This document shows, in pieces, positions 29,398-49,144 of a stretch of 64,000 nt of DNA. Positions within the stretch are counted from its first letter, which is position 1. Each line of letters opens with the position of its first letter. The notes under the pieces are model-generated. The model was not told the DNA's origin and made no database searches. It saw only the letters and a program-made list of their open reading frames with translations. A program made the translations under genes and the position numbers. This DNA comes from Anthoceros angustus (taxonomy: Eukaryota > Plantae > Anthocerotophyta): positions 434,001-498,000 of the forward strand of contig VJWM01000019.1 of the NCBI GenBank assembly GCA_010909165.1. Reading direction: 5' to 3'.

Positions 29398-29860
29398 CCT
29401 AGCCTTGAATCCTATAGATCGCTTCACTTTGAATCTTATTGGTCACTTAGTATTATATAGTCCTAGCCTTGAATTTGAATCTTATTGGTCACTTAGTATT
29501 ATATAGTCCTAGCCTTGAATCCTATAGATCGCTTCGGTTTGAATCTTATTGGTCACTTAGTATTATATAGTCCTAGCCTTGAATTTGAATCTTATTGGTC
29601 ACTTAGTATTATACAGTCCTAGCCTTGAATCCTATAAATCGCTTCACTTTGAATCTTACTGGTCACTTGACCTTGAATCCTATTGGTCACTTGACCTTGA
29701 ATCCTATTGGTCACTTGACCTTGAATCCTATTGGTCACTTGACCTTGAATCCTATTGGTCACTTGACCTTGAATCCTATTGGTCACTTGACCTTGAATCC
29801 TATTGGTCACTTGACCTTGAATCCTATTGGTCACTTGACCTTGAATTTATTGGTTACTTA
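29398..29860. repeat. Composite tandem array: A(64 bp)-B(46 bp)-A-B-A' followed by 7 perfect 24-bp units
   Basis: A/B units start at 29398, 29462, 29508, 29572 and 29618. ccttgaatcctattggtcacttga x7 spans 29671-29838. Confidence 0.95.
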
Positions 29861-30402
29861 ACTTGCCTTTTACTTTTGAACTTTTGTAGAAGATATAATT
29901 TTTTAAAAATATACAAATTTATTACGGTACTCTTCATAACGTATCAAAAGGTTCCGGGCTGGAGACAGTCTCTAGCAGATCTAGCAGATCTGCACTGTAC
30001 AGGGCTGCGCAGGCCGCCGATTGCGGGCAAGCATGTGCAGAAAATAGTTCATGGGAGTCGCGGAGGAGCACACCGTCGTGATCTGGAACAGTGGGCAGCG
30101 GGTAAAATCGACGAGTCAGGAAGCGATCAAGAAATGTAATGTTTGGGAGAGGCTTACACGACGGGTGGCGGGGAACGGTCGTCGGAAGAAAGCGCCAGCC
30201 TGAAAGCCAGGACTGGAAGAGGTCGATCGTCCACGGACCTTGTCGACTGCACTGGTCGGCGCCCAGTCCGAAACTCCGAGTCCTCTCCTGAAGGTGGGTC
30301 GGTGGATGCGACGGCGGTGGGTTGGAGGAGCGAGAATGCGGTGGTGGGTTGCGAGAAAAATGCTGCTCCGGAGATGGGTTTGAGCAGGTAGTCGGGACAG
30401 GG

Positions 30403-31675: not shown

Positions 31676-33790
31676 ATGGCGCATTGTGACAAGTGCAAGC
31701 TGGGGCAATGCAAGAGGTGCGAGAGGGAGGATATACGGTTGGTTACAGATGTGTTGAAGGAGCGCCTGTCCATGTTGTTTCTCACCGTGGCTCCACCCAT
31801 GGACGTGCCTGGCCCCGCCGATGTGATCATCTATGTGTCCAAGAGGGCAGACAGCACGGAGGTGGTGCGGCTCCTGTGCCACTCCTGCATGCTCAAGAGG
31901 CCTTGTGACTTCTTCAGGGAGATCCTGGAGTATACGAGAATTGTGAGCAGACGGCCTACCATCCGGCCCCCCAGTTTTGTGCTGGACAGAAACAGCTTCT
32001 TCATGGAGCCTGATGGGGAAGGGGGGTTCTTGGGCCCGGCAGCGAGGACCATCTACGAGGATGTGAAGAGGGGGAGTGTGACGGGGTTGAAGAGGCAGAG
32101 TGTGGTGGCCCAGCCTCAGGAGGAGGCGCAGCTTGAGAGGCAGAGTATCATGCTTGCCCAGAGAGCCAGCATGGTTGCCAGTGGTCCTGTCCTGGATTCC
32201 AAGGCTTGTGTTAAACGGGGGAGGAGCCTGCAGGCCACTGGAGAGCAAGGTGGAAGTTTGAAAGAGGATGGGGTTGTGAAGGAGACCTCGTTGCAGAGCA
32301 GCATTGTTGCTGGTGGAGAAGCCAAGGATGGTGTCAAGATGGTCGAGGGAAAGGATGGGAGTGTGCTTCCTAATCCTGCTCCTGCTGCTACGAGGAGGGT
32401 GACCATAGTTGATCCTAAGGATGCACAGCAGAACGCTGCAGTCAGGAAGGAGAGCCAGCAAGGTGCTGTAAGATCTGGGAGCCTTCAAGGAGAAGGTGTT
32501 TCTGGGGCCGACCTAGCAGGAGAGGCTTGTGCAAAACTTGGGAACATCGCAGGGACAGGACAGGCGGTCTCAGAACCTGCAGATACCGTCAAGACGGACC
32601 TAGAGGAGGAAGATAGGCCTCCCAGTGTGGAGGGGGGGGACATGGCTGACGAACCTTGTTCCATTCGGAATGATTTCCTGGTCCAGCTGATGGCATTTGA
32701 AGCAGCCAGAAGGGAGACAGTCCATGAGAGGGAGACCCTGGTCAAGTTCCATCACAAGGGTATTCCGGTGGGCAAGTACTACGTGAAGCTCAAGATGCTG
32801 TCGTGGACAGAGGCCATGCTGCATGGTCTCATGGAGTACATCTACACAGACAGATGTCATCTCACGGTACAAGACCTACCTCTTGTGTACGCCGCTGCTG
32901 ACAAAATGATGCTCACATCCTTCACGCAAGCAGTGAAATACCGGGATCCTGTGCCATATGTGCGGTTTGCCATGGAGAACGAGGACAACAGACGGTCCAT
33001 TCTGAAGCTCTGCCAGCTTGCAAGGTGCCCCGAGCTCGAAAGCATCCAACAACTGTGCGAAGCCTTCGCATACGAACGAGAAAAGACCAGCAGGAACGTG
33101 CACATCCTCGTCTTCCACAGTGCCAAGAGACTCGGTCGGCACGCGGATGTGTTCGCTCAGGGTTTCCACAACTACTGCGGGTCTAAGTTCTGCATCCTCA
33201 AGGATCTGCCTCCGCTCTACGAGCATGGCTACCCCGAAGAGTGTTTCAAGAACCCACAGTGGACCAGAAGCCGACGCTCTCTGCTCAACACCTATGGCAG
33301 AGTTGTTGGCCCCCCTGGGAGCAAGTCTGAGCGAGATGCCAAGGACCTGGAGTACATTGTCATTTCCAGGCAGCCGCAAGGGTTCGGGGAGAGCAAGAAG
33401 GAACCCAACCTGGACGAATGGTGCACATCCCAAGCCGAGCAGAAGAACAAGGACAAGGTGTGGAGAGTTTACCTGTTCGGGCAGGAGATTGCTAGGACGT
33501 GCTACAGGTTCTTCAGATACGCTTGCGGTCTCACCCACAGACCCGTGTCCCGTGAATCCTTCAGCTTGAGGATGGTATCAGGCTTGATCGTCGGAGACAT
33601 CCTTGTCGAAATTTTGAAGAAGGCTGTTCCTGAAGGTGTCTTCCAGCCTCAATCTGCGCAGGCATACTGCCCTAAGCACAGCAGGACCAGACATGCAATG
33701 CAGGATTGTGCATTCCCTCACGGCAAAGAGAAGGATGCATCCTGTGTGAGACGCCATGGCACCTGCCAACCTCGTTGCATGGAATCATAA
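31676..33790 (+). CDS. Intronless BTB/POZ-like protein (704-aa ORF); C-terminus uncertain
   Basis: VVRLLCHSCMLKRPCDFFREIL resembles the BTB (A)H+xxL..S.YF segment. MLHGLMEYIYTDRCHLTVQDLPLVYAAADKMMLTSF resembles the BTB C-terminal helices. GC3-biased codons. Confidence 0.7.
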   Translation: MAHCDKCKLGQCKRCEREDIRLVTDVLKERLSMLFLTVAPPMDVPGPADVIIYVSKRADSTEVVRLLCHSCMLKRPCDFFREILEYTRIVSRRPTIRPPSFVLDRNSFFMEPDGEGGFLGPAARTIYEDVKRGSVTGLKRQSVVAQPQEEAQLERQSIMLAQRASMVASGPVLDSKACVKRGRSLQATGEQGGSLKEDGVVKETSLQSSIVAGGEAKDGVKMVEGKDGSVLPNPAPAATRRVTIVDPKDAQQNAAVRKESQQGAVRSGSLQGEGVSGADLAGEACAKLGNIAGTGQAVSEPADTVKTDLEEEDRPPSVEGGDMADEPCSIRNDFLVQLMAFEAARRETVHERETLVKFHHKGIPVGKYYVKLKMLSWTEAMLHGLMEYIYTDRCHLTVQDLPLVYAAADKMMLTSFTQAVKYRDPVPYVRFAMENEDNRRSILKLCQLARCPELESIQQLCEAFAYEREKTSRNVHILVFHSAKRLGRHADVFAQGFHNYCGSKFCILKDLPPLYEHGYPEECFKNPQWTRSRRSLLNTYGRVVGPPGSKSERDAKDLEYIVISRQPQGFGESKKEPNLDEWCTSQAEQKNKDKVWRVYLFGQEIARTCYRFFRYACGLTHRPVSRESFSLRMVSGLIVGDILVEILKKAVPEGVFQPQSAQAYCPKHSRTRHAMQDCAFPHGKEKDASCVRRHGTCQPRCMES

Positions 33791-35336
33791 TTAAATCGGG
33801 CAGACGATTGAGCAGCATGAGAATGAATGGACCCTAACACAGCTCTTGGTACAGGTCTGGACATGGTGCAGCGCAGAGGCTCTGGATACTTCATCGGAGG
33901 ATTCAACTACGGCAACAACATCACTCTCACCGGGCATCCCATCAAGCTCTTGGAGGCCAAGTGCATCCCAAAGACATGATAGGCAGGGCAGCTCTGAGGA
34001 TGATTTCCTGGTCCAGCTGATGGCATTTGAAGCAGCCAGAAGGGAGACAGTCCATGAGAGGGAGACCCTGGTCAAGTTCCATCACAAGGGTATTCCGGTG
34101 GGCAAGTACTACGTGAAGCTCAAGATGCTGTCGTGGACAGAGGCCATGCTGCATGGTCTCATGGAGTACATCTACACAGACAGATGTCATCTCACGGTAC
34201 AAGACCTACCTCTTGTGTACGCCGCTGCTGACAAAATGATGCTCACATCCTTCACGCAAGCAGTGAAATACCGGGATCCTGTGCCATATGTGCGGTTTGC
34301 CATGGAGAACGAGGACAACAGACGGTCCATTCTGAAGCTCTGCCAGCTTGCAAGGTGCCCCGAGCTCGAAAGCATCCAACAACTGTGCGAAGCCTTCGCA
34401 TACGAACGAGAAAAGACCAGCAGGAACGTGCACATCCTCGTCTTCCACAGTGCCAAGAGACTCGGTCGGCACGCGGATGTGTTCGCTCAGGGTTTCCACA
34501 ACTACTGCGGGTCTAAGTTCTGCATCCTCAAGGATCTGCCTCCGCTCTACGAGCATGGCTACCCTGAAGAGTGTTTCAAGAACCCACAGTGGACCAGAAG
34601 CCGACGCTCTCTGCTCAACACCTATGGCAGAGTTGTTGGCCCCCCTGGGAGCAAGTCTGAGCGAGATGCCAAGGACCTGGAGTACATTGTCATTTCCAGG
34701 CAGCCGCAAGGGTTCGGGGAGAGCAAGAAGGAACCCAACCTGGACGAATGGTGCACATCCCAAGCCGAGCAGAAGAACAAGGACAAGGTGTGGAGAGTTT
34801 ACCTGTTCGGGCAGGAGATTGCTAGGACGTGCTACAGGTTCTTCAGATACGCTTGCGGTCTCACCCACAGACCCGTGTCCCGTGAATCCTTCAGCTTGAG
34901 GATGGTATCAGGCTTGATCGTCGGAGACATCCTTGTCGAAATTTTGAAGAAGGCTGTTCCTGAAGGTGTCTTCCCAGCCTCAATCTGCGCAGGCATACTG
35001 CCCTAAGCACAGCAGGACCAGACATGCAATGCAGGATTGTGCATTCCCTCACGGCAAAGAGAAGGATGCATCCTGTGTGAGACGCCATGGCACCTGCCAA
35101 CCTCGTTGCATGGAATCATAATTAAATCGGGCAGACGATTGAGCAGCATGAGAATGAATGGACCCTAACACAGCTCTTGGTACAGGTCTGGACATGGTGC
35201 AGCGCAGAGGCTCTGGATACTTCATCGGAGGATTCAACTACGGCAACAACATCACTCTCACCGGGCATCCCATCAAGCTCTTGGAGGGGGCCAAGTGCAT
35301 CCCCAAAGACATGATAGGCAGGGCAGCTCTGAGGAT
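32670..35336 (+). repeat. Near-identical 1330-bp tandem duplication of the 3' part of the BTB gene
   Basis: atgatttcctggtccagctg at 32670 and 34000. The copies differ by one visible SNP (cccc/ccct) and by homopolymer indels. The junction shows gatttcc microhomology. Confidence 0.95.
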
Positions 35337-35553
35337 AGATTTCCCCACTGAGAGGACGTTCGTCACCTACATGTCTACTTCCCGTACTGTCGGGGTCCAG
35401 ATCGAGGCCACTTCGCGTCTGTTTTTCGTCAAGTCCTTGGAGGATCTGATGGGCATGCTGGAGTACGCCACCGGCATGAACGAGAAGGCATTCATTCCGT
35501 GGGAGGAGACAAGGACTATGGTAGAGCTAGTGAGGCCTGTAGAGCCGTTTTAG
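35158..35553 (+). CDS. Coding-like segment of 131 codons, possibly the disconnected C-terminus of the BTB gene
   Basis: GC3-rich codons with a globular-looking translation (YFIGGFNYGNNITLTGHPIKLLEG). It is separated from the BTB frame by several stops. Confidence 0.4.
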   Translation: MDPNTALGTGLDMVQRRGSGYFIGGFNYGNNITLTGHPIKLLEGAKCIPKDMIGRAALRIDFPTERTFVTYMSTSRTVGVQIEATSRLFFVKSLEDLMGMLEYATGMNEKAFIPWEETRTMVELVRPVEPF

Positions 35554-36073
35554 ACCCATGCTTCTGATCCTGCTCTTGCGAACAATCCCACCTCAAACTT
35601 TTTCGAATGAGATCACCACGAACTGCAAATCTGCTCAGCCTGCGGTCAAAGTGATGATAAAAGATAAAACTGTTGTCCTGTGTTGGGCATTGATCAAAAC
35701 GTTTCCTTCAGCGACAATGGCATTTCTCAACCGTTCTGGACAACGTGCTCAAAACATCAATGCCCAAATGGTTCTCATGAATATCCCCAAACACACTAGG
35801 TACCTATTTCTCCTAACCCACAAAAACTGCCCGCCTGTAAGGCGTCCTCCAGCAAATTTACCCGATACTTCTCTCCATGGAGAAACCAGGGCAGAGAACG
35901 AAGATGAAGCCATCGGATCAACGAACAGAGCCAACCTTCCTGTTGCACATGCAAATTCCTTCAGCAATGAAACAAAGATGCGAAGTTCTTACGAAGCAGC
36001 TTAGGAAGGAAAGTCATTCAGCTGTCAGGTAGCATTCTACATGAGGAGGAAGTGGGTACCTGGCTCGTCAGCT

Positions 36074-37651
36074 CTAGCCACCACCACTGCTGTAGGACTT
36101 CCCCAGAAGCATCATCTGAAGCTGGTCATTGATGGAGAGCACTCCGGCACCAGCAACTGCCCGTAAGATGTTGGCTCCAGCACCCTTGAAGAGAGATTTG
36201 TGGCCCTCTTTTGCAACAATCTGTTTGTAAGCATCATACGAGCTCTTGTATTTCACAGCTTCTCCTGACGTCATCATCATACGACGACGAACCGTATCCA
36301 AGGGGTAGGATGCCAGCCCTGCAGCAATTGTGATCGCCCATCCTAGGAAGAAACTTCCGAGAAAGCTACCCTGTGCAACACACAAATTTGCATCATCTGC
36401 TGAGCTCGCAGCAGCCAACTCCTCAAACGATCAACCTAGCTAACAGGAAGGACGTCGTTAAACACCAGTGCACTTACCTCCAGATTACCCGTCAGAAGAA
36501 CTGGTTTCAATGAGTCATACATCCCAAAATATAAGCCACGATACACCACGATTCCCACGCAAGAAATGTTGAATCCACGGTACAAACCAGCAATCCCATC
36601 TGTTTTCAAGGTCTTTCTGTAAACATCCAAAAGACCATTGAATTGACGCTCTCCTCCTCCCTTTTTTGAGGACTTCGAATCACTCGCCAATCGTGTCCTT
36701 GCATAGTCAAGGGAGTAAACAAATGAAAGAGAAACTGCACCCGCCATACCACCGGAAGCTAGATTTCCACCAAACCATTTCCAATATCCATCTTTCTCTT
36801 TTTTATACCCAAATAAGGCTTTGAAGTAGTCTTTGAAAGCGAAATTCAATGCCTACATTTTGAGATGGGCAAGGTGTTAGAAGAAATTATGTAGACCATT
36901 TTCAGTCTACAAAAACTATCACAGCAATGTAATAAAAAGAAGAGATAATCTTTATCTATACTTTTAAATTATATTCACTATCAACTCAACACTGGTTTGC
37001 AAATTGAGCATATGCTTGCAATAAAAATGAAAAGAAAGATACAAACATAGGAAGGTGAGTATATACTTGTGTGGGAAAGTAACGGATAACATTTGCCAAG
37101 TTTCCACGCCACAGAGCCATGGTTCCCTCTTCTGCCATCGTGCGTTGGAAACAATCCGCAATACCTTTGTATGGCTTAGCAAGACGACCTGTCTTCAACA
37201 TCTCATCTTGATTCTGAATGAGGAGCTTGATACGCTCAATGGGAGCAGCAGCCGTCTTTGACACTGCCGCTGAGACACCTCCCATGAGAAAATCAATTAG
37301 AAAATCATTCACACTTTTACCTTCTTTTGGCTTACCGGCCTTCCCCTCTGAACCGGATGCAACAAATATCGGTGGACTAGAGAACAGTCTTGAGGTACAA
37401 CTTGGAGTTGCTATAACACTATAGTTGGAACCACCAAAGAAACAACTACGAGCATATGCACCAATGCATTTGGTCTCATCTGGAGACCCATGAAGTTTTG
37501 GAGCTTGAAGTACAGACATCTCCACAATCTTCTTGGAAGAGTTGAAATGCTCATAGTCCAAAGTAGACACATTTGGAGAGGAGTAAAGCTGTCTTGGAAA
37601 CCTTTGAAGAAGAGAAGGAACTATTGGAGACCATTTCTCCTCAAAAGCCAT
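36074..37651 (-). CDS. AAC: Mitochondrial ADP/ATP carrier (3 exons: 37651-37067, 36852-36478, 36370-36074)
   Basis: [68 protein letters not shown], the RRRMMM signature and [10 protein letters not shown]. Plant-type N-terminal extension. Confidence 0.97.
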
Positions 37652-38776: not shown

Positions 38777-41700
38777 TTTCCTGGACTTGAAATTTGGCTT
38801 GTTGGCTTCGGCTGCAAGTCCCGTTTGACTAGGATCTGTCACAGAAACCTTAGGGCTATGGCAAGAATAAAGGGCTTGCGGAAGCTCCGCGCTGAACTGC
38901 GGCGCTTCCATGATGAACTCTCTAGAATCAACTGCGTTCCATTTCATGGTGGGGAACATAGTGATGCACGAGAAATATCTGATGAAGGCAGTGAGGATTC
39001 TGGCAGGCAGGATGACGATGCAGTTTGGGACAGTGTTAACAGTGCAGGACCAAGCCATTCTTTCCAGAATGAGGCTGAGCAGTGGAAAGACGAGAGGGAC
39101 AGCCGGGAGCATAATCGTCAAGCTGCCCGACCTGCCGAAGTATCGTCATCGAAAGATTCTGGTTTTGATGATTTGAACACAGTTGCAGGGGATCAATCAA
39201 GGCCAGAGGTGGGAGTTCTTCCAATAGCGGGGCTTCCTGGAGACAAGGAGCATGCCACATCTCCAGGAAAAGGGCCGCTCGGTAGTGGTGAAGGTTGTGG
39301 TGAGCTAAGTTGCAAAGCTGCTATCTGGAATGGACAAAGTCAATGTGAATGTCACATCGACCAAGTTCTTCGCATATCAGCCACCTCTTTGTTCACATCC
39401 AATGTTGGCCATGTTCTGTCTGCAGAGAAGGGAGGCACTAATCAGTCAGGACCTGGCTTCTACGATGTTGAGGTTCAGGCACTTCAACCAGGTTCTACTC
39501 CTTCTCAGAGACGAGCTGTTTCCGATAATATTACTGTCCATAAAACAACAGGTACAAGGTCAGACGTAGCAGAGGATACCAGGTCTCTTACTACGTCAGA
39601 AGCTCTGAATATATCTGCCTCTCACCAAATTGCATATCATTGCAGAGATGGTATACAAACGCTGTTGGGAGGCACTCAGCAGGTAGTTGGACATGCACCC
39701 ACTCCCCTCATCGATAGAACAGGGTCCGTATTTGCAAGCGGATCTCTAATAGTCAATCTTGCGACTAATGGATCTGGTGGAACACGGGTCTTGGCAACAA
39801 CCAAAGCTGCTGTCCTTCCTCAGCCCAGTACATTTCAAATTGCCGGAACGGCTGAGCACCTTGATGGCAAAAGCTTGGAGAAGCAGACACAGGCTCCCGA
39901 GCTCTCAGAAAAGAACAGGCTTGAAAGTATATCTAATCTCGAGTCTCGTTGGAAGAAGAAGGGCCGAAATGCAGGTACGAAGGAAGACGTCAGTGCGGCA
40001 AAGATGGCCCATATGATCAAGCAGGCCCTGCAGGTCCGCAAGACATATTTTTAGCCTTTCGTTCTGCTCCTCATTATTCGTGCAGGTCTACGTTTTGAGC
40101 TTCTCCCCTGTTGTATCATGCATACAGATGCAGGGCACGGAGGCTGAACTTAAGCATGCATTTGGATATCGTGGCATCTTACAAGGAGGTACATCAAGCA
40201 GGTTCCCGAAGAGAAATGATGAGAAGCTGAAATATAGTGCTCTGACAGGCCCACCATCTGCAGCTCCCAAAGACAGCGACAACAGCGAACGCGGGATCGA
40301 TGCTCAATCGTACTTGCAAGCAATCATGGCTGCTTTGTCCCCACAGGAACAGATGCACCAGGCAGCAGTTCAGAAGTGTTCCTATGCAGAAGGTGCCGTG
40401 AGTCCAAAGAGACCTCAAGAAAAGATGTCTTCATCATCTCCAAGTGAGGATGAGGGAACTTGTGACAGAGGAACATGCATGTGTCCGAACGAACCAACGG
40501 AGGACAAAGGTCCTGGGCCATTTACCGCCTGGGTTACCACCACGCAGGATACGGCCTCTAAGCATTTCGACACAGTGCTTGAAGTTCCACCAGGGTCTCC
40601 AATCAGCATTACCTATGCACCCAAGTCCTGCCAGGTACAACCCGACAAGCAGGAATATGTGAGCGTCCAGGCCCCCTACATACATGAAGAATATACAGAA
40701 TGCCCATCTCTAGACAATTTGCAACAGCAGCCAGCTGCTGAATGTAACCCTTTGCAGTGCATGCTAGTGCCGCACTGCGATAACCGAGAAGCCATGATGC
40801 CAAAAGATCCGACAGAGAAAAGATTCGAAGCTGCGACCAGACTTTTGTACAATCTGGATTCCAAGAATGGCAGAAGTGGGGGTGAATGTGCATTCTCTCG
40901 TGATTGTCGTTGGAATCGTGGGAGTATCTATGGACGTCCTAAGCTTCCAATTCAAAAGAAGGAATCGCAGCCCCAATCGAAGGGCAAGCCACAATCAAAA
41001 CGGGGCCAGACTCATAAGGTGAGACTGATCGCACTTGCATAGCTTACAGTTTCCAAAGAATCAGCTATTTGGCATGAGTTTACAAGTTGGTGCGGTCTTG
41101 CAAAGCAGGACTGCCCATCATCCAGTGGCCTGCAGAAAGGGCAATGACTTTCTGATTTCATCTTCTGAAGTAGTTTGAACTTGACAGGGCCAACAAGAGC
41201 GAGGCAAAGCTAATGGAGATCCACATTTTGATGTGGACAAGCGCATAGCTGTCGCTGCTGCAGGTCTGGCCAATGACATCGAGGCACTGGTGGGAAATTG
41301 TGAAACAAACAACTGTATGCATGATCATGTACCGTGTAGATACACAAGATTAGATGCACCAGTTGAAGCTGCTGCACAGGCAGTAAGTAGGCTTACACAG
41401 GATGCCGTTCCTGAAGAAGTGGTCCAGTCTAGGTGGCGACAGTTCTTGGCGACACAGATTGGGCGGACTGTTTGTGCACAAGAGGCTGTCAAAAACATGA
41501 TAGGTGGAGGCATAGACTTTGATCAATTCCACCAGGTTAGTCCTCACTGTCGTGCACACACTCTGGGCGTAGTGGCCAAATGACAAGTGCTCCCCAGTTT
41601 GGAGCATTTGTCAATTATCAAGTAGCCACTTGATCGATATCCTAATTAATAGTCAATGCCTATGGTTTTTGCGGACCTGACCCACATGCTTTTCAATTCT

Positions 41701-44700
41701 ATCCACCATCCTAGCTTGTGTGAGTTCGCTGCTTAGACGTGATCAAGTAAGTTACTGACGGTGGTGTTCTTGGCTGGCTGAAGGAGTTGAATGACATTAG
41801 GAAGGAAAGAGACAGGATCAAGCAGCTCGAGGAAGTGTATCACCGCTTCAAGCAACCCCTTTCCACGGACAAGCAGCTGTTGAACTGCTGGCAAGAACCT
41901 TGCCTTGCGCCAGGTTATCAGGTACCTGGCATGTCACTCCTGGCAAACGTCACTCTCAACAAAGGAATGTACTTTGTTTCAACTCGAATGAACTCTGTTG
42001 CCTTATGATATTCCAGGGCGAAAACCAGGATGAGATGTTCCTCAACAGCCTTCGCCAAGAAGTGGAGTCAAGGATTGCATGTGTGGATACCGGCGCACGT
42101 ACTAAGAGGAGGAAGGTTGGGCCCTCACCTAGTCTTCAGGGGAACAAAACGATAATGCAGCCCAGCGCTCGGAATATTTCCCAAGCATCTACCGGCGGAG
42201 TCAAACACCAAAATCCAGATAACAGTGCACTGGGAGGAAGTGTTCGTGAACTATTGCTTAAGAGGCCTGTTGTAGCACAACCAGTTTGTAAAAGCCCACA
42301 GCTTGAAAAGCTTGTTAAGGAGGTTCAGGCTATGCTCAAAAAAGCCACACAGGTTGCAACAGGCACAGGTCAACATTCCTCCAAACCGGTGGATCTCGTT
42401 GCGCCGAGGTTTGAGAGGTTGGCTGCAAAAACCAAGCCTCCTTACCCGATGGATGGTCTAGAGGCGGCTAGACCAGGAAGGAATCACTTTGTTAGTGCAG
42501 CACTCCGCAGGAAGGAAGTGCGGCCTCCTGAGTCACTATTTAAAGCTGGTGCACCAACGAAGTGGATGGGAGATGTTATACGGCACACACCGCTCTCAAG
42601 GAGGGGACTGGCAGATGATGTACATCCTGTAAAGCTACCAGTATCCCCTTCTACGAAAAAGTCTAGGAAAGGAGCAGTGGAGCCTCAGCAATCAAGGCGG
42701 TTAGTCACAGCTGCTGAGAGCAAGGCAAAGATTAAGCAAAGATCAGATAAAGCAACGAGGAAGGTTGAGAAGTGGCAGATTGCTGGTCCTGTAATTGATT
42801 TCGATAACCCATATGAACCAGAGAGGGACCTATATCCCGTCCCCAAGTCCAAGGGGAGCAGAAAAAAAGCTGAGAAACCCAACGCAAAGAAGCATGATAT
42901 AGGCCCAAGTAACAGGAACCCAGTTATTGATTTCAGCAAGAAATTGGAAGATGAGAGGAACCTCCAGCCTCTGGTACGGTTGGGGCAGAAAGCTGAAAAA
43001 CGCAGGAGCCAGCTTGAGTCTGAATGGAAGCGTTTGGAGAAAGACAAGAGACTAGTTGAAATTTATGGGGCATCACTTCCCAGGAAAAAGTTTCAACATA
43101 AAGCTCAAATCACTACAGCATACTCTCATCCACAGAATGTAGCTAACCTGTATCTGAAGGCAGCTGGAAGTCGCCAAGACACTGTTGACTCCAGTTCCAC
43201 TCATAGTCATAGGGGTCTGGCCGCTGTTTCCCATCATAAAAGGAAGGGGCATATCAGGTCTCCACGATCCAGATCTAGAAGCCCACTTTCTGAACAGGTA
43301 GACGATTGGGTCATTGACAGGGGTCTTAACAATGAGAAAAAGATGAAGTACCCAATCACCCATCCCCAGAGCAGAATTGGTGGCCGTCCATACGCTGCAC
43401 CCAGAGGAGGACATTTTGATCACTTGAATAGGAAGGGGCTTACCAGTTCTCCACGATCCAGATCTAGAAGCCCATTTTCTGAACAGGCAGACGATTGGGT
43501 TTCTGACAAGAGTCTTAACAGCGAGAAAAAAATGAAGTACCCAATCACTCATCCCGAGAGCAGAATTGGTGGCCCTTCATACGCTGGTCCCAGCGGAGGG
43601 CATTTTGATCACTTGCACAGGAAGAGGCCTACCAGTTCTCCCGGATCCAGATCTAGAACCCCGCCTGCCGAACAGGAAGAGGACTGGGCCCTTGATATGC
43701 GTCTTGAGAAAGAAATCAAGGGGCCTCCAACCCATCGCCAGAACAGAATAGGCGGCCCTCCATACGGTGTGTCCAGAGGAGAACCTTCTCATCACTTGAG
43801 TAGCCATCCAGTCAGGCCCCTCCCTTCTGATCCTGACCCGAACATTCCGGTGAAGCACCTTGAGAGTAGACCCCTGATACACTCGTCCAAAGGTGCTGAA
43901 GATGAGGATGTTGAATCGTCAGGACCATCTCCTCTTACAAGAGAACTAAAAGACGCTGACTTTGATGGGTTCATTGAGACACTCACAGCAGAAGTGCAAG
44001 AAGAGATCTTAAAACTACGCCTCAGCAAGGACAGTGCGGGCAATGAGACTCTCACAGCAGAGGTGCAAGAGGAGATCTTAGAACTACGCCTCAACAGGGA
44101 ACAAGTGGGCAAAACTGGTGGAAAGGAAACAACTGCTGAAGCTTCTGAAGAACGGTATGAGTCCGACGAATTCCACTCGGATACTGAGGATCCAGCTTTT
44201 GATCCAACTTATCAACCGACAACCCTGAAATCGTTGGAGGGAGACTTAACACAGGAGAAAAGAGAGCTGGAAGACGAGGTATTGGGGCATGCTCTGAAGG
44301 AAATTATGTTGAAGAACGTCCTCAGCGACCAGGAGAGGTATGCATTCACCAGACAAATTAGGCCAAAATCTGTACATGGTCACCAAACTGGGAATTCTCA
44401 TATGTGTGGAGTTCTGATTCAGGTGGGTCTTTTGCGATGTGCAGGCATTATAAACGAATGCAACTTCAGGAGGGTGTGGAGCCAGACGGTGATGACTACC
44501 CTGTGCCTGGTAGGGAACACCAGCCAGAAACATCAAGGGTCATCAGAGGCAATTTGCCTTTGTCACAGGAATCTGATAGATATCAGGAGAGAGCTATTGG
44601 TGTACAAACCCCCTTGAACCGTGTGTCCATTGTGGGCGTTCAGACAACAGGGTATGAGCAAAAATATGCGGGAGTACAAACTACTGACTATGACAAAAAA

Positions 44701-46218
44701 TATGCTGCTGTGCAAACTTCTGACTATGACAGGAGATACGCTGAATCTCAGACCAACGAGAGGAAATATGCCGGTATCCAAACCATCCCTTCTGAAGGAA
44801 AATATGCTGGTGTGCAGACCAGCCACTTTGAGAATTACGGTGAATCGCAGACAACTGCCTCGGAAAGGAGATATGCTAGTGCTCAGACTATGAGCTTAGA
44901 TGAGAAATATGCTAGTGTCCAGACCATGCCCGCAGAAAGAAAGTATGCTAGCATCCAAACCGACGCAGAGATGACAACGAGCGTGCAAACAGCTATGGAT
45001 GATGGGGCTCCAATAATGAACTTTCATGAAGGTGAGGTTGGATGGGACGGTGAAAGAGCTCCTGCGTCCAAGAAGGTCGTGTATGCACTTCAGTCAGTTC
45101 CAAGCAGTAGCAAAATTGGCTACTACGAGCCTGTATACGGCCAGATGAAATCTCCGGAGGGCGAACCTGGCTGGGATACATCACGTGAAGAAAAGTCTGC
45201 TCCCGAGAAATCTGCATACCAAACAGATCCAGGAAGTGGTAAAGCTGGGTACTCCCAGCCCACGTATGTGGAAGCTCAGGAAGGCGAACTTGGCTTGGGG
45301 AGAACACGTGAAGAAGAGTCTGCTCCCAAAAAATCTGTATCCGCGTTTCCAGGCAGTAGTCGAACTGGGTACTTTGAGCCATCCTATGGCCAGATGGACG
45401 CTCAGGAAGGCAGAGTTGAACGCGAGGGACCACATGAGGAAGGTTCTGCTCCTAAAACAATTTTGTCCGCCCTCCTAGAGATGCCGAGTGATAGCAAATC
45501 TGGCGATGCTTACCGTTCTCCGGAGTATGGCAGAATGGAAGAATGGCATTACAAGAGCGAACCACAGCAGGATCCCTCTGACCCTCAAGGTGCCAAAATG
45601 CTACCCAGTGTAAAGCAAGAGAGAAATCTGGAAAGACCGAGCTCTCCACCATCGCCTTCCACTCCTAGCACACCCTCATCTGATCCTATGCATGAGGCAA
45701 TGCTGGTAGCCGCTTTGGCTCCATTTCCTGAACTGACCACTACAAATGAAGAAGTCCATGTGCTTGGTAGAGAGTTTGCTGCAAGATATGGTGCAGAAGT
45801 GCCCGGTGCAGGACCCAGTGAAGCAGCAAGAGGTGTAGGGGAGCTACCGAGAGCTGACTGGCCAGTTGCAGTGGACCAAGGTGAACTTGACCAGCCAGAT
45901 ATTCGCTGCCAACCAGAACTACGAGGCCAACCAGAACTAAGAGGGCAACCAGAACTAAGAGGGCAACCAGAACTCAGAGGGCAACCAGAACTCAGAGGGC
46001 AACCAGAACTAAGAGGGCAACCAGAACTAAGAGGGCAACCAGAACTAAGAGGGCAACCAGAACTAAGAGGGCAAACAGAACTAACAGGCCAACCAGCACA
46101 AAGAGGCCAACCAGAACCAAGAGGCCAACCATCTATCAGAGGCCAACCAGATACAAGGACCGAGACTGGTGTACAAGGTGCAGTGGAAGAAGACATCAGG
46201 AACGTCCTACTGAGGTAA
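38777..46218 (+). CDS. Very large (>2,000 aa by my estimate) multi-exon low-complexity orphan protein with several internal repeat arrays; 5' end not defined
   Basis: Consecutive long ORFs (38825-40054, 40080-41042, 41233-41583, 41900-44617, 44404-46218) can be joined through phase-compatible GT-AG introns (e.g. donor 40034/acceptor 40127, donor 41019/acceptor ~41187, donor 44339/acceptor ~44444). Stop TAA at 46216-46218. Confidence 0.65.
43259..43760 (+). repeat. 189-bp (63-aa) coding repeat, ~2.7 copies
   Basis: SPRSRSRSP.SEQ.DDW...NxEKKMKYPITHPxSRIGG units start at 43259, 43448 and 43637. Confidence 0.9.
43976..44100 (+). repeat. 69-bp (23-aa) coding duplication
   Basis: ETLTAEVQEEIL(K/E)LRL at 43976 and 44045. 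Confidence 0.9.
45913..46146 (+). repeat. 18-bp coding minisatellite: PELRGQ x9 plus 4 degenerate units
   Basis: ccagaact(a/c)agagggcaa units from 45913 to 46074, then TELTGQ, PAQRGQ, PEPRGQ and PSIRGQ. Confidence 0.95.
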
Positions 46219-48075
46219 GCAAGCAGTGCCATTTAAACTATTGCCATGTTGGATGTTGAATGCTTCACATAATTGGAAGACTTGTTTCTGCAGTCGGCGG
46301 CATTTGAGAAGGGTAGAGGCGACGGAATCGGTTGCACTCTCTATGATCTCAAAAGCTGTGCGGAGCGACTCATCCAGATCATCATCTTCTGAATCCTCTG
46401 CGGCATCTTTCACGATTATACAACCACCGGCACAGCCAAGTTCCCCTTTATCTCCGGGTGAAGTGGCAGGTAATCTGTTAAAGCTTCATTAGGTTCCTCA
46501 TCTTTCAGTACTAAAGGCTTGCCCTGGTACTAAAGGATTTGCTCGTGAACCTGAGTAGGTGCCGTAAGCATGAACCCAGGGATGCTTCGTAGACGTTCAA
46601 GCCTGGAGCAAGACCTTGGCACAAGATACTTCAAGCTGAGAAGGTACTCGTCACTGGCTGCAGCGGAAGTCCAACTGCAACACCATCCCACATCTTCCCA
46701 AATGTCAGAAGGTACATCCAGCACTCACATCTAGTGTCCCAAAGAGAAGCACATGCCACTCAAGGCTCTAAGAAAAAGGCTGTGAACTGTTGCAATGCTG
46801 ACAGGTGAGACGGACATTGGAGCACTGCTGGAAATTGACGAACCTGGACAAACTCAGTTCGTTACTGGCACAGATCCTCAAGGAGAACCTGGTGAGATTA
46901 CTTTGCAGCAGCCACCGACAATGCAGTCAGACCTCTTGGATAGGAATTCAGACAGAAGCTGGTCCGAGGGGGAACTGGACTTAGGATTGTTGGAACTGGA
47001 CTTGGGAGCGTTGGAGTCTTGAAGTCGATGGTCTCTGAAAACTGAGGGAACTGGCTTCTATCAGATCTAAAACGTGAGCCAACATCACATTACAGCGACT
47101 TGTATGTCATACAATTCCTCCAGGTAGATTTGGTCTGTTCTGCGTATATCCTGCTTGACTGAGTCTTGGGCACATTTCAAAATCGCATAGGTATCGATGA
47201 TGATCCCGTCTCCACTCAAGTCATACTGTAAATGCTCCATTCAGTTTGGCACTTGAGACTCGACGGAATTCCTACATAAGAAGAAGAAGAATATATTCTA
47301 GTCCACTTGGACGTAATACCTGGACGGTTGCCGCCTAATTTTTCAGTTCCACTGAAGTCCTCTACATATGCACTGGAATGGACCATAGGAATTGACCACT
47401 GGTGTGAGTTGCGAGTTCATCGTGCAGACATGTCAATAATAGTGTGCGCCGGCCGACAATGGGTGGGCTCTAGTCAAAGCAGCCAGTCTAGTTGTTGAAT
47501 AAGAAATTGATGCGATCAGCTGCGGAGGAGAGTCGGGAATAAGAGCGCAGCACGAGCTTCGACCTTTGGAAACAACGCTGAAACATAGGTGCAGCCTGGT
47601 GTTCAATTGGAAGGTGGCTGGAGCGTGAAAAGAAGGAAGGTTCCAGCAAGTAGCTTACGGCACGTTTTCTGATGAAAGGTCCAGGCAATGGCCTGCAAGC
47701 TGTTAGTAAGATGCGTTGGGAGTTCTTCCAGTGCTCGCCTTGTAACTTTTCCGTCTCCTGATTTGTCTCTAGTGATGTCACACAGGGTTCCAGAACATCC
47801 CATAAGATTTTCAGATGGCTGGGATTAGATGGGTAGAGTAGGTCGGTGCTGCCATAGCTCATACATGCCATGCCCTTGGTCATCGGGGCCCTGTTTCTTT
47901 GACCAGTCTATCAGGGAAGATGGAAAAACTGACGAGTCTGGACAAACTCTCACAATTCGTACTGTAACTGGTACGGATCATCAGAGAGAACCTGGTGGCC
48001 AATATTGCAATAGGAAGCCAATTCAAGCAGGAGCTGGTCTATGGGTTGACTCAACGTAGGAGCGTGGGACTCATG
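46207..48075 (-). pseudogene. Tandem pair of decayed copies of an unknown minus-strand protein gene
   Basis: Matching peptides occur about 1.05-1.1 kb apart: DSNAP..PSDQLLSEF/HQVLLED/EFVQVRQF/PSHL..LEP*V versus ESHAP..PIDQLLLEL/HQVLSDD/EFVQTRQF/PSHL..LEPCV. Both copies contain in-frame stops. Confidence 0.5.
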
Positions 48076-48135: not shown

Positions 48136-49144
48136 TTACACGACGGCGGCTTTTGTGTCATCTAGTTCATCCAAGGAGAGCTGCTTTGTGCTGTGAATAT
48201 ACTCCTTGGTTGAGCTTTGGTCAATATCAGTCAGGTCACACTGCTGCACTTCAAATTTCTGCTGTAATGCTTGCATGATTGATTCAAGAAAAAGATCTCG
48301 AGATGGCAGATGATCTTTTAGCCGGCAAATGAAATCAGTATGCCGCCGAGCCTGTGAGACCTTGTGCTGTTCAGTTTCGTGGGTATACACGAGTGGCATC
48401 ACACAGCAGACAAAAGAAACACACAAGAGGGACTTGCCTGGCGATATTCGGGACTCCGATCAGGAAACTTCAGGTAGCTCATTCGAGTGGCCTCGTAGTC
48501 CCACAAGAAGGATGTATGATGAAGCCATCTATCTTTGATGATAGACTGTGCATTACCTCCAAACTTCATCTGGCCGATGACATAGTCTGCACACACACAC
48601 CTACACCTGGTCACCCAGCCACACCAGGACTACTGTTCCCCAACTGAAGCTTACCGTGCTCGAGGAGCCGAAACCCTGGAACGTCCCGGAACACAGACGA
48701 GTACATGCCCTCAGTCCACTTCATTATGGGACGAGGATACAGCTGCAACCCTGGCTCCGCATCTCGTGAGCAGATGAAAGTGACAAAAACTGTCCCCTGA
48801 TCAACCATAACAGTTCCTCCTCCACTGAAGCGTTTGATAACAGGGATCTGGTCACGCACGACAGCCTTCACATCAAGAAGCAGCTCTGGACGCCTGCAGG
48901 GCAAGGTTGCACTCTCAGCTCCCTGATACAGCAAGCCTGAAACGGGAGTTGAGCATCATCTTCGGCGAGGTAGGACCCGGTACCCTGAGATTCCCATGAC
49001 AATGGACGGAGGAAGGGTCCCATCGTTGAGGATGCACCAATTGTGGTGCGTCGTTCGAAGCAACAGCTCCTCCAAATGCAGCTGTTGGAGAATAGGGAAG
49101 CCTCGGAGGTGCAGCAATCGCATTCCAGGTCTGCCTGCCATCAT
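48136..49144 (-). CDS. Biotin/lipoate A/B protein ligase family protein (LplA-like, At3g29010-type; multi-exon)
   Basis: LRGFPILQQLHLEELLLR...NWCILNDGT, IPVIKRFSGGGTV, QLYPRPIM, KFGGNAQSIIKDRWLHHTSFLWDY and RHTDFICRLKD. Confidence 0.93.

Follow-up and report, generated by a model that had tools for sequence, protein, structure and literature searches.

A selected array of twelve glutamine-threonine motifs in a very long Anthoceros angustus protein as a candidate docking scaffold for LC8

A 64,000-nucleotide stretch of the genome of the plant Anthoceros angustus (assembly GCA_010909165.1, contig VJWM01000019.1, positions 434,001 to 498,000; hereafter the window) holds a very long plus-strand gene, one exon of which encodes twelve glutamine-threonine (QT) dipeptides at nearly regular intervals. 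It is flanked on one side by an ADP/ATP-carrier-like gene of the minus strand and on the other by minus-strand open reading frames (ORFs) beyond 47.4 kb. We found that the QT units form a multivalent set of short linear motifs that is under selection. It sits in a stretch predicted to be disordered, within a very long plant protein that is lineage-restricted. An earlier note on this DNA had proposed that the array docks LC8 (DYNLL, a dynein light chain), and we infer that LC8 is the best single candidate for its reader. The array and the exon that carries it comprise the following features (motif positions are counted from the Q).

44445 to 46214, plus strand: array exon, 1.77 kb, delimited by eye from GT..AG sites and frame continuity.
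44590 to 44994, plus strand: array of twelve xQT octamers, from position -5 of motif 1 to position +2 of motif 12, with a period of 10-12 residues.
44590 to 44613, plus strand: motif 1, RAIGVQTP, the sole unit that scores within the range of known LC8 binders.
44662 to 44964, plus strand: nine core units (motifs 3-11) of the form [KRN]-Y-[AG]-x-[VISA]-Q-T, with Y, Q, and T invariant and Ala at -3 in 8/9.
44971 to 44994, plus strand: motif 12, MTTSVQTA, an edge unit without Tyr in which S-V-Q-T is kept.

In the frame of the ORF at 44404-46218 (plus strand), the twelve QT dipeptides fall between 44605 and 44991, with Q codons at 44605, 44641, 44677, 44713, 44749, 44779, 44815, 44848, 44884, 44920, 44956, and 44986. 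The units read AIGVQT, SIVGVQT, KYAGVQT, KYAAVQT, RYAESQT, KYAGIQT, KYAGVQT, NYGESQT, RYASAQT, KYASVQT, KYASIQT, and TTSVQT, and successive QT dipeptides are 12, 12, 12, 12, 10, 12, 11, 12, 12, 12, and 10 residues apart; both the peptides and their recurrence every 10-12 amino acids are as the earlier note had listed them. Core units carry an acidic and a basic residue before the [KRN]-Y-[AG]-x-[VISA]-Q-T form, and the three edge units that lack Tyr (motif 1, RAIGVQTP; motif 2, SIVGVQTT; and motif 12, MTTSVQTA) all retain G/S-V-Q-T. The 590-residue peptide of the exon contains 14 QT dipeptides, compared with a mean of 2.7 and a maximum of 11 in 20,000 shuffles, and a 140-residue window of it holds 12, a count that never exceeded 7 in 20,000 shuffles of the same peptide. 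Outside the array, Y-[AG]-x-x-Q-T is absent from all six frames of the window. The array segment is polar and poor in aliphatic residues, and has 13 Tyr in 145 residues.

Proportions of nonsynonymous (pN) and synonymous (pS) differences were obtained by Nei-Gojobori counting across all pairs of units, with the Q codon as the point of alignment. In the full set of twelve units, the Q and T codons have a pS of 0.9 and a pN of 0.00; in the nine core units, pN/pS over the Y, A, Q, and T codons is 0.03 (pS 0.75). Linker codons have a pN/pS of about 0.5 (pN 0.48-0.55). Codon positions 1 and 2 of Y, Q, and T are invariant among the core units, and pairwise identity at the third position is 0.61 for Y, 0.44 for Q, and 0.36 for T. 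With no replacement at Q and T and with silent sites among the units near saturation, the codon pattern shows translation in this frame and purifying selection on the peptide. Gene conversion cannot be the source of the uniformity, because it would have homogenised the silent sites too. The units are also old: Tandem Repeats Finder recovers no more than 2.2 copies of a 36-nt unit, with 83% identity. The most constrained element is phi-Q-T, because the three edge units without Tyr still hold G/S-V-Q-T; nine units have a second element under constraint, Tyr-Ala. The earlier note had claimed that the DNA has diverged around a retained QT and that the peptide is under selection, and these counts bear out both statements. 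It had also set down beforehand, as a point on which its reading could fall, whether this frame is translated, and the codon pattern alone answers this in favour of translation.

The rest of the gene was modelled by reading introns and exons by eye from the sequence. In this approximate model, the gene would run from about 38.86 kb to 46.47 kb or beyond, a length of at least 7.6 kb, with about 2,250 or more codons, with the following parts around the QT array.

38858 to 40030, plus strand: probable first large exon, with an ATG at 38858 (approximate model).
42017 to 44337, plus strand: upstream exon of about 773 codons and low complexity, with a 189-nt repeat in 2.4 copies (43241-43688) and a 69-nt repeat in 2 copies (43975-44112).
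44338 to 44444, plus strand: inferred GT-AG intron of 107 nt, phase 2, which joins the 773-codon exon to the array exon.
45028 to 45540, plus strand: four repeats of about 40 residues each downstream of the QT array, EGExGWD...SAPKK...GY.EP.YGQM (approximate limits).
45910 to 46131, plus strand: array of an 18-nt unit in 12 copies, encoding QPELRG (93% matches at the DNA level; pS 0.19).
46215 to 46293, plus strand: inferred intron of 79 nt, in whose GTAAG donor the stop codon of the array-exon ORF (46216-46218) sits.
46294 to 46469, plus strand: following exon past the 79-nt intron, with which the gene goes on beyond the array-exon ORF.

The acceptor of the 107-nt intron is the only one that keeps the frame open; an acceptor at 44422 leads to a stop. 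Tandem Repeats Finder detected at least four further tandem peptide arrays in the gene. Among them, the QPELRG array is young where the QT array is old; the 215-residue open frame that it leaves on the opposite strand is probably spurious. All four of the roughly 40-residue repeats hold SAPKK and GY.EP.YGQM-like stretches, and two of them start with EGExGWD, in which a GW dipeptide stands in an acidic context. The 189-nt unit encodes a further conserved peptide module, of 63 residues, with SPRSRSRSP, an acidic [DE][DE]W, and KKMKYPITHP..SRIGG.

The array is predicted to sit in a disordered part of the protein. AlphaFold2 gave it a predicted local distance difference test score (pLDDT) of about 30 and no secondary structure, in a run on a single sequence with no alignment, which makes this weak evidence. 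The same modelling places helices upstream.

43955 to 44023 and 44042 to 44116, plus strand: two predicted helices (AlphaFold2, single sequence).
44228 to 44332, plus strand: predicted 35-residue amphipathic helix (pLDDT 68-78), which ends at the exon boundary, about 90 residues ahead of the first QT.

All three predicted helices lie within about 180 residues upstream of the exon junction, and their heptad pattern is imperfect by eye. The description of the host in the earlier note, as a giant protein, agrees with the modelled length.

Its further description of the protein as an orphan agrees with the database searches, in which the exons were queried one by one and not as a joined spliced protein. 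None of the inferred exons had a Pfam match above threshold, four exons had no match in sequence searches of the PDB, and a feature search of the ESM Atlas returned no usable match. A metagenome locus scan for the array gene and exact-protein look-ups were likewise blank. A word-index search with the 604-residue ORF found no match; it covered lengths of 332-1,057 residues, a range too short for a protein of about 2,250 residues. An exhaustive HMMER search of 1.84 billion representative proteins with the translation of 44446-45900 yielded a sole match, P0001 (E 5e-13). This 1015-residue protein has a C-terminal apolipoprotein-L domain and about 27 tandem 12-residue units, SDSK[HY]D[LI]F[QK]TTP. 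Period (12 residues) and register (K-[YH]-x-x-phi-Q-T-T) are common to P0001 and the array. In P0001 the residues at -1 (Phe), -2 (Leu), and -3 (Asp) are unlike those of LC8 sites, and nothing beyond the repeats aligns. We therefore rejected P0001 as a homologue and regard the match as a resemblance of repeat to repeat. That period and register both coincide with those of the plant array is an odd convergence, and the P0001 repeats also give a spurious MgtE_N match in Pfam.

To calibrate these searches, we used other genes in the window. The best match of its glycolate-oxidase-like gene is 78% identical, followed by Sphagnum at 71%, and a neighbouring 704-residue ORF has a single match (61% identity), on a 6.5-kb Logan contig (L001). 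With 75-79% DNA identity, this contig runs colinear with 31.5-35.6 kb in the window and stops short of the array gene. The best named matches for this genome are to mosses and other land plants without flowers. The libraries searched thus hold no copy of the proteins of this genome and one distant relative only, and close relatives of the genome are barely represented in them. The absence of an array-bearing orthologue is mild evidence that the array is restricted to its lineage, because an orthologue that kept the array should score at least as well as P0001.

LC8 is the best candidate reader because Q-T after a beta-branched residue is the LC8 anchor, and the context and pitch of the units fit. 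Our proposal that each motif docks LC8/DYNLL is a tentative one, drawn from the sequence and held at somewhat less than even confidence. We compared the units with 79 binder and 32 non-binder octamers (Table S4 of PMC6607443), whose columns were tallied by hand. The anchor is VQT or IQT in 9/12 motifs, SQT in 2/12, and AQT in 1/12, so that a [T/V/I]-Q-T core is present in most; VQT, IQT, and SQT all occur among the 79 binders, SQT in four (PMC6607443). Position -2 is G or S in 9/12 motifs, and curated LC8 peptides commonly have G, S, A, or E there. Position -5 is K or R in 9/12, and in our tally K/R is enriched at -5 among the binders (17/79). The consensus of the yeast and fungal LC8, Dyn2, is charged-X-G/S-[VLI]-Q-T-D/E (PMC3727929), and the array core G/S-[VI]-Q-T matches it at -2 and -1.

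Several features weigh against docking of LC8 on these units. Position -4 is Tyr in nine motifs and Ile in one, and only motifs 1 and 12 fit the expectation of a polar residue there and of no hydrophobic one larger than Ala; the 79 binders have only D, S, T, N, H, E, A, or C at -4 and no aromatic or large hydrophobic residue (0/79), and 'hydrophobic -4' is a named class of non-binders (PMC6607443). Position -3, which is preferably large and often K/R, with A in 6/79 and G in 1/79 binders (PMC6607443), is Ala in eight motifs, Gly in one, and Ile, Val, and Thr in motifs 1, 2, and 12. Position +2 favours D, E, or P and tolerates hydrophobic residues poorly (PMC6607443); D or P stands there in 2/12 motifs and a hydrophobic residue (I, M, M) in three, and the remaining motifs have T/S (listed six times), N, and A. 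The AQT anchor of one motif occurs in none of the 79 binders and in one non-binder (PMC6607443). We also built a log-odds matrix from the hand-tallied columns, as an approximation to LC8Pred, and simulated binder scores from the column frequencies. Against these simulated scores, motif 1 is at the 22nd percentile and the remaining eleven lie between percentiles 0.1 and 3.6, with flanks that are still above the random median. The ELM pattern has K/R at -3 and TQT, and none of the twelve units would match it. The conservation of Tyr and Ala is left unexplained by LC8 preferences. Furthermore, about 0.5% of random 12-residue repeat units would carry phi-Q-T, so a genome-wide scan will meet some phi-Q-T repeats by chance, and two of the spacings (10 residues) are shorter than any tested spacing that we found in the literature. 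The array is thus not a canonical LC8 motif set as judged from its residues, since the -4 and -3 positions depart from the binders in most units. Of the earlier claim of an LC8 hub, the compatible anchor and spacing and the predicted disorder stand; the Tyr at -4, the small residue at -3, and the AQT anchor are unlike those of curated binders.

If LC8 is the partner, each motif would lie in the groove of an LC8/DYNLL dimer as an additional beta-strand, and the dimers would link two copies of the array protein. With sites every 11-12 residues, up to twelve dimers could stack into a stiff rod of roughly 45-50 nm, in which cooperation would make up for the weakness of single sites. The identity of the partner, the pairing of two chains, and the rod are all our proposals. 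Five Dyn2 dimers on Nup159 make a 20-nm rod (PMC4315244), which suggests 4 nm per site, or about 12 extended residues. In ASCIZ, the QT2,3 segment with a 3-residue linker (11-residue pitch) carries two adjacent LC8 dimers (PMC10046861), and 9/11 spacings in the array are 11 or 12 residues. The regular pitch is not independent evidence of selection on spacing, because tandem duplication of a 36-nt unit gives it anyway. The low matrix scores would be compatible with binding in an array, because sites in Nup159 and KANK1 score low yet bind: weak, poorly scored sites of Nup159 are rescued by multivalency (PMC12057147), and KANK1, with weak or non-canonical motifs and short uniform linkers, binds at least 15 LC8 dimers (bioRxiv 10.1101/2025.07.16.665182). 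LC8 motifs are often flanked by dimerisation domains (PMC3078936), and helices are predicted just upstream here. LC8 is present in all plant genomes examined (PMC2239267).

In its proposed mode of action, the array is most similar to the dynein-interaction domain (DID) of Nup159 and the L2 linker of KANK1. The Nup159 DID of S. cerevisiae has five tandem QT motifs that bind five Dyn2/LC8 dimers in a 'pearls on a string' rod (PMC4315244). Like the array, it is a disordered tandem of QT motifs with very short linkers and a G/S-[VLI]-Q-T core, and its approximately 4 nm per site equals the 12-residue pitch found here. Unlike the twelve-site array, it has five sites, and the array differs in its Tyr at -4, Ala at -3, and mostly missing D/E at +2. 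We found none of the marks of a nucleoporin (FG repeats, C-terminal coiled coil) in the array protein and no sequence homology to Nup159. Human KANK1 L2 similarly has many low-scoring motifs at a regular short pitch in a long disordered region, with a predicted rod of about 50 nm; its motifs are heterogeneous, often without QT, and have a pitch of about 15 residues, whereas the array consists of tandem duplicates with a canonical QT and a pitch of about 11.5. ASCIZ/ATMIN (7-11 TQT motifs) shares the high valency, and it tolerates an 11-residue pitch. It differs in its mainly TQT anchors, polar -4, linkers of 3-41 residues, heterogeneous sub-saturated complexes, and zinc-finger DNA-binding domain. 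Chlamydomonas RSP3 (radial spoke protein 3) is a multivalent LC8 client within Viridiplantae, with anchors of IQT type, TQI type, and TQT (PMC3392930; PMC6607443), and is relevant because the sperm of the array host are flagellate. As an axonemal protein, RSP3 is conserved and its domains can be recognised, whereas the array protein has no family match and has Tyr at -4.

The conserved Tyr and Ala, which are just what LC8 statistics disfavour and which are kept as strictly as QT in the nine core units (pN/pS 0.03), lend weight to another reading, namely that the array is a multivalent array of motifs or stickers for a partner other than LC8 or for self-association. We consider this a serious contender, if a doubtful one. 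Under it, K-Y-A-x-phi-Q-T may possibly be a lineage-specific motif for a different module, perhaps a beta-strand capturer such as a Tctex-type light chain, and the Tctex site of dynein intermediate chains is also a Q-centred strand motif (PMC3727929). With at least four further tandem arrays in the gene, the protein seems to make general use of interaction modules built from repeats. Yet no module is documented to read Y-A-x-phi-Q-T, and the edge units lose the Tyr and keep phi-Q-T. In a variant of this reading, evenly spaced Tyr in a polar background rich in Q/S/T/G would promote condensation; the 13 Tyr in 145 residues and the few aliphatics suit such behaviour, but stickers and spacers alone need no invariant Gln-Thr. 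The invariant QT is likewise left unexplained if the units are tyrosine-based Y-x-x-phi motifs, of the sorting type recognised by adaptor mu-subunits or of the Atg8-interacting type. Six of the nine core units do read Y-A-x-[VI], and in our literature search YASIQT and YASVQ appeared only as SIRP-alpha immunoreceptor tyrosine motifs, so that the sequence is a Y-x-x-phi site in animals. However, S or A takes the place of phi in three core units, and the residues ahead of the Tyr are basic. Atg8-interacting motifs favour acidic residues before the aromatic. Membrane-protein tails, moreover, are where sorting signals act, and a reading of the translated exons by eye, with no predictor, showed no obvious membrane-spanning segment; Pfam gave no match either. 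We judge this explanation to be highly improbable.

The array could also be a neutral expansion of low-complexity sequence that inherited its QT regularity from the founding unit. The gene is indeed rich in tandem repeats, including the young QPELRG array with 93% DNA identity, and no homologue with such an array was found among the 1.84 billion representative proteins. Drift would, however, have altered the amino acids of the motif as it has those of the linkers (pN 0.48-0.55), and essentially no replacement is seen in Q, T, and Y codons whose silent sites are near saturation; gene conversion, as noted, would have homogenised the third positions as well. Neutral expansion is thus highly improbable in our estimate. 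FHA, CK2, 14-3-3, SH3/WW, and S/T-Q kinase motifs were also compared by eye, and none fits the twelve units consistently.

Returning to docking of LC8, the array would in that case be the first polybivalent LC8 scaffold of a land plant, with twelve K-Y-A-x-[VI]-Q-T sites, a rod of about 50 nm made of two chains, and a Tyr(-4) variant of the motif; taken as a whole, this picture is unlikely, though well worth entertaining. The earlier statement that no plant example is known holds for land plants, for which we found only single-site or predicted clients, and does not hold for the green lineage, where Chlamydomonas RSP3 is one (PMC3392930). All land plants keep LC8, flowering plants have lost the dynein motor, and very few plant LC8 clients are known. 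A dense, regular, and selected QT array would be a concrete client candidate. If LC8 binds, the array would be its densest and most regular and a natural design for a rod built of LC8, with the shortest regular pitch that we found described, and the Tyr(-4) variant would mean that plant LC8 has shifted in specificity or makes an extra contact. Should LC8 not bind, what remains is a linear motif, K-Y-A-x-phi-Q-T, that is under strong selection and previously undescribed.

The neighbouring genes include a second lineage-restricted gene upstream of the array gene. This plus-strand gene (31676-35600; 2040-4690 of L001) contains the 704-residue ORF and a 386-residue ORF and shows a weak BTB-like signal. 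It has no Pfam family, and its one relative in 5.8 billion protein clusters (P0122, 61%) comes from Logan run SRR33208241. A segment of about 1.3 kb occurs in it as two tandem copies (32670-33942 and 34000-35273; 100% identity), with a start-to-start distance of 1330-1331 nt, and the orthologous L001 holds this segment once. Because the copies are identical and L001 has one, the duplication is either very recent or an assembly artefact. Between this gene and the array gene lies the ADP/ATP-carrier-like (mitochondrial carrier) gene (36074-37651, minus strand), which has at least three exons and was recognised by eye from translated ORFs. On the other side, ORFs at 48399-48934 (minus strand) show by eye a lipoate/octanoyl-transferase-like signature (..RFSGGGTV..) and are probably the next gene downstream. 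Farther upstream, a 186-residue ORF at 29579-30139 (plus strand) encodes a perfect tandem of about eight copies of LESYWSLD and is probably microsatellite-like DNA rather than a gene.

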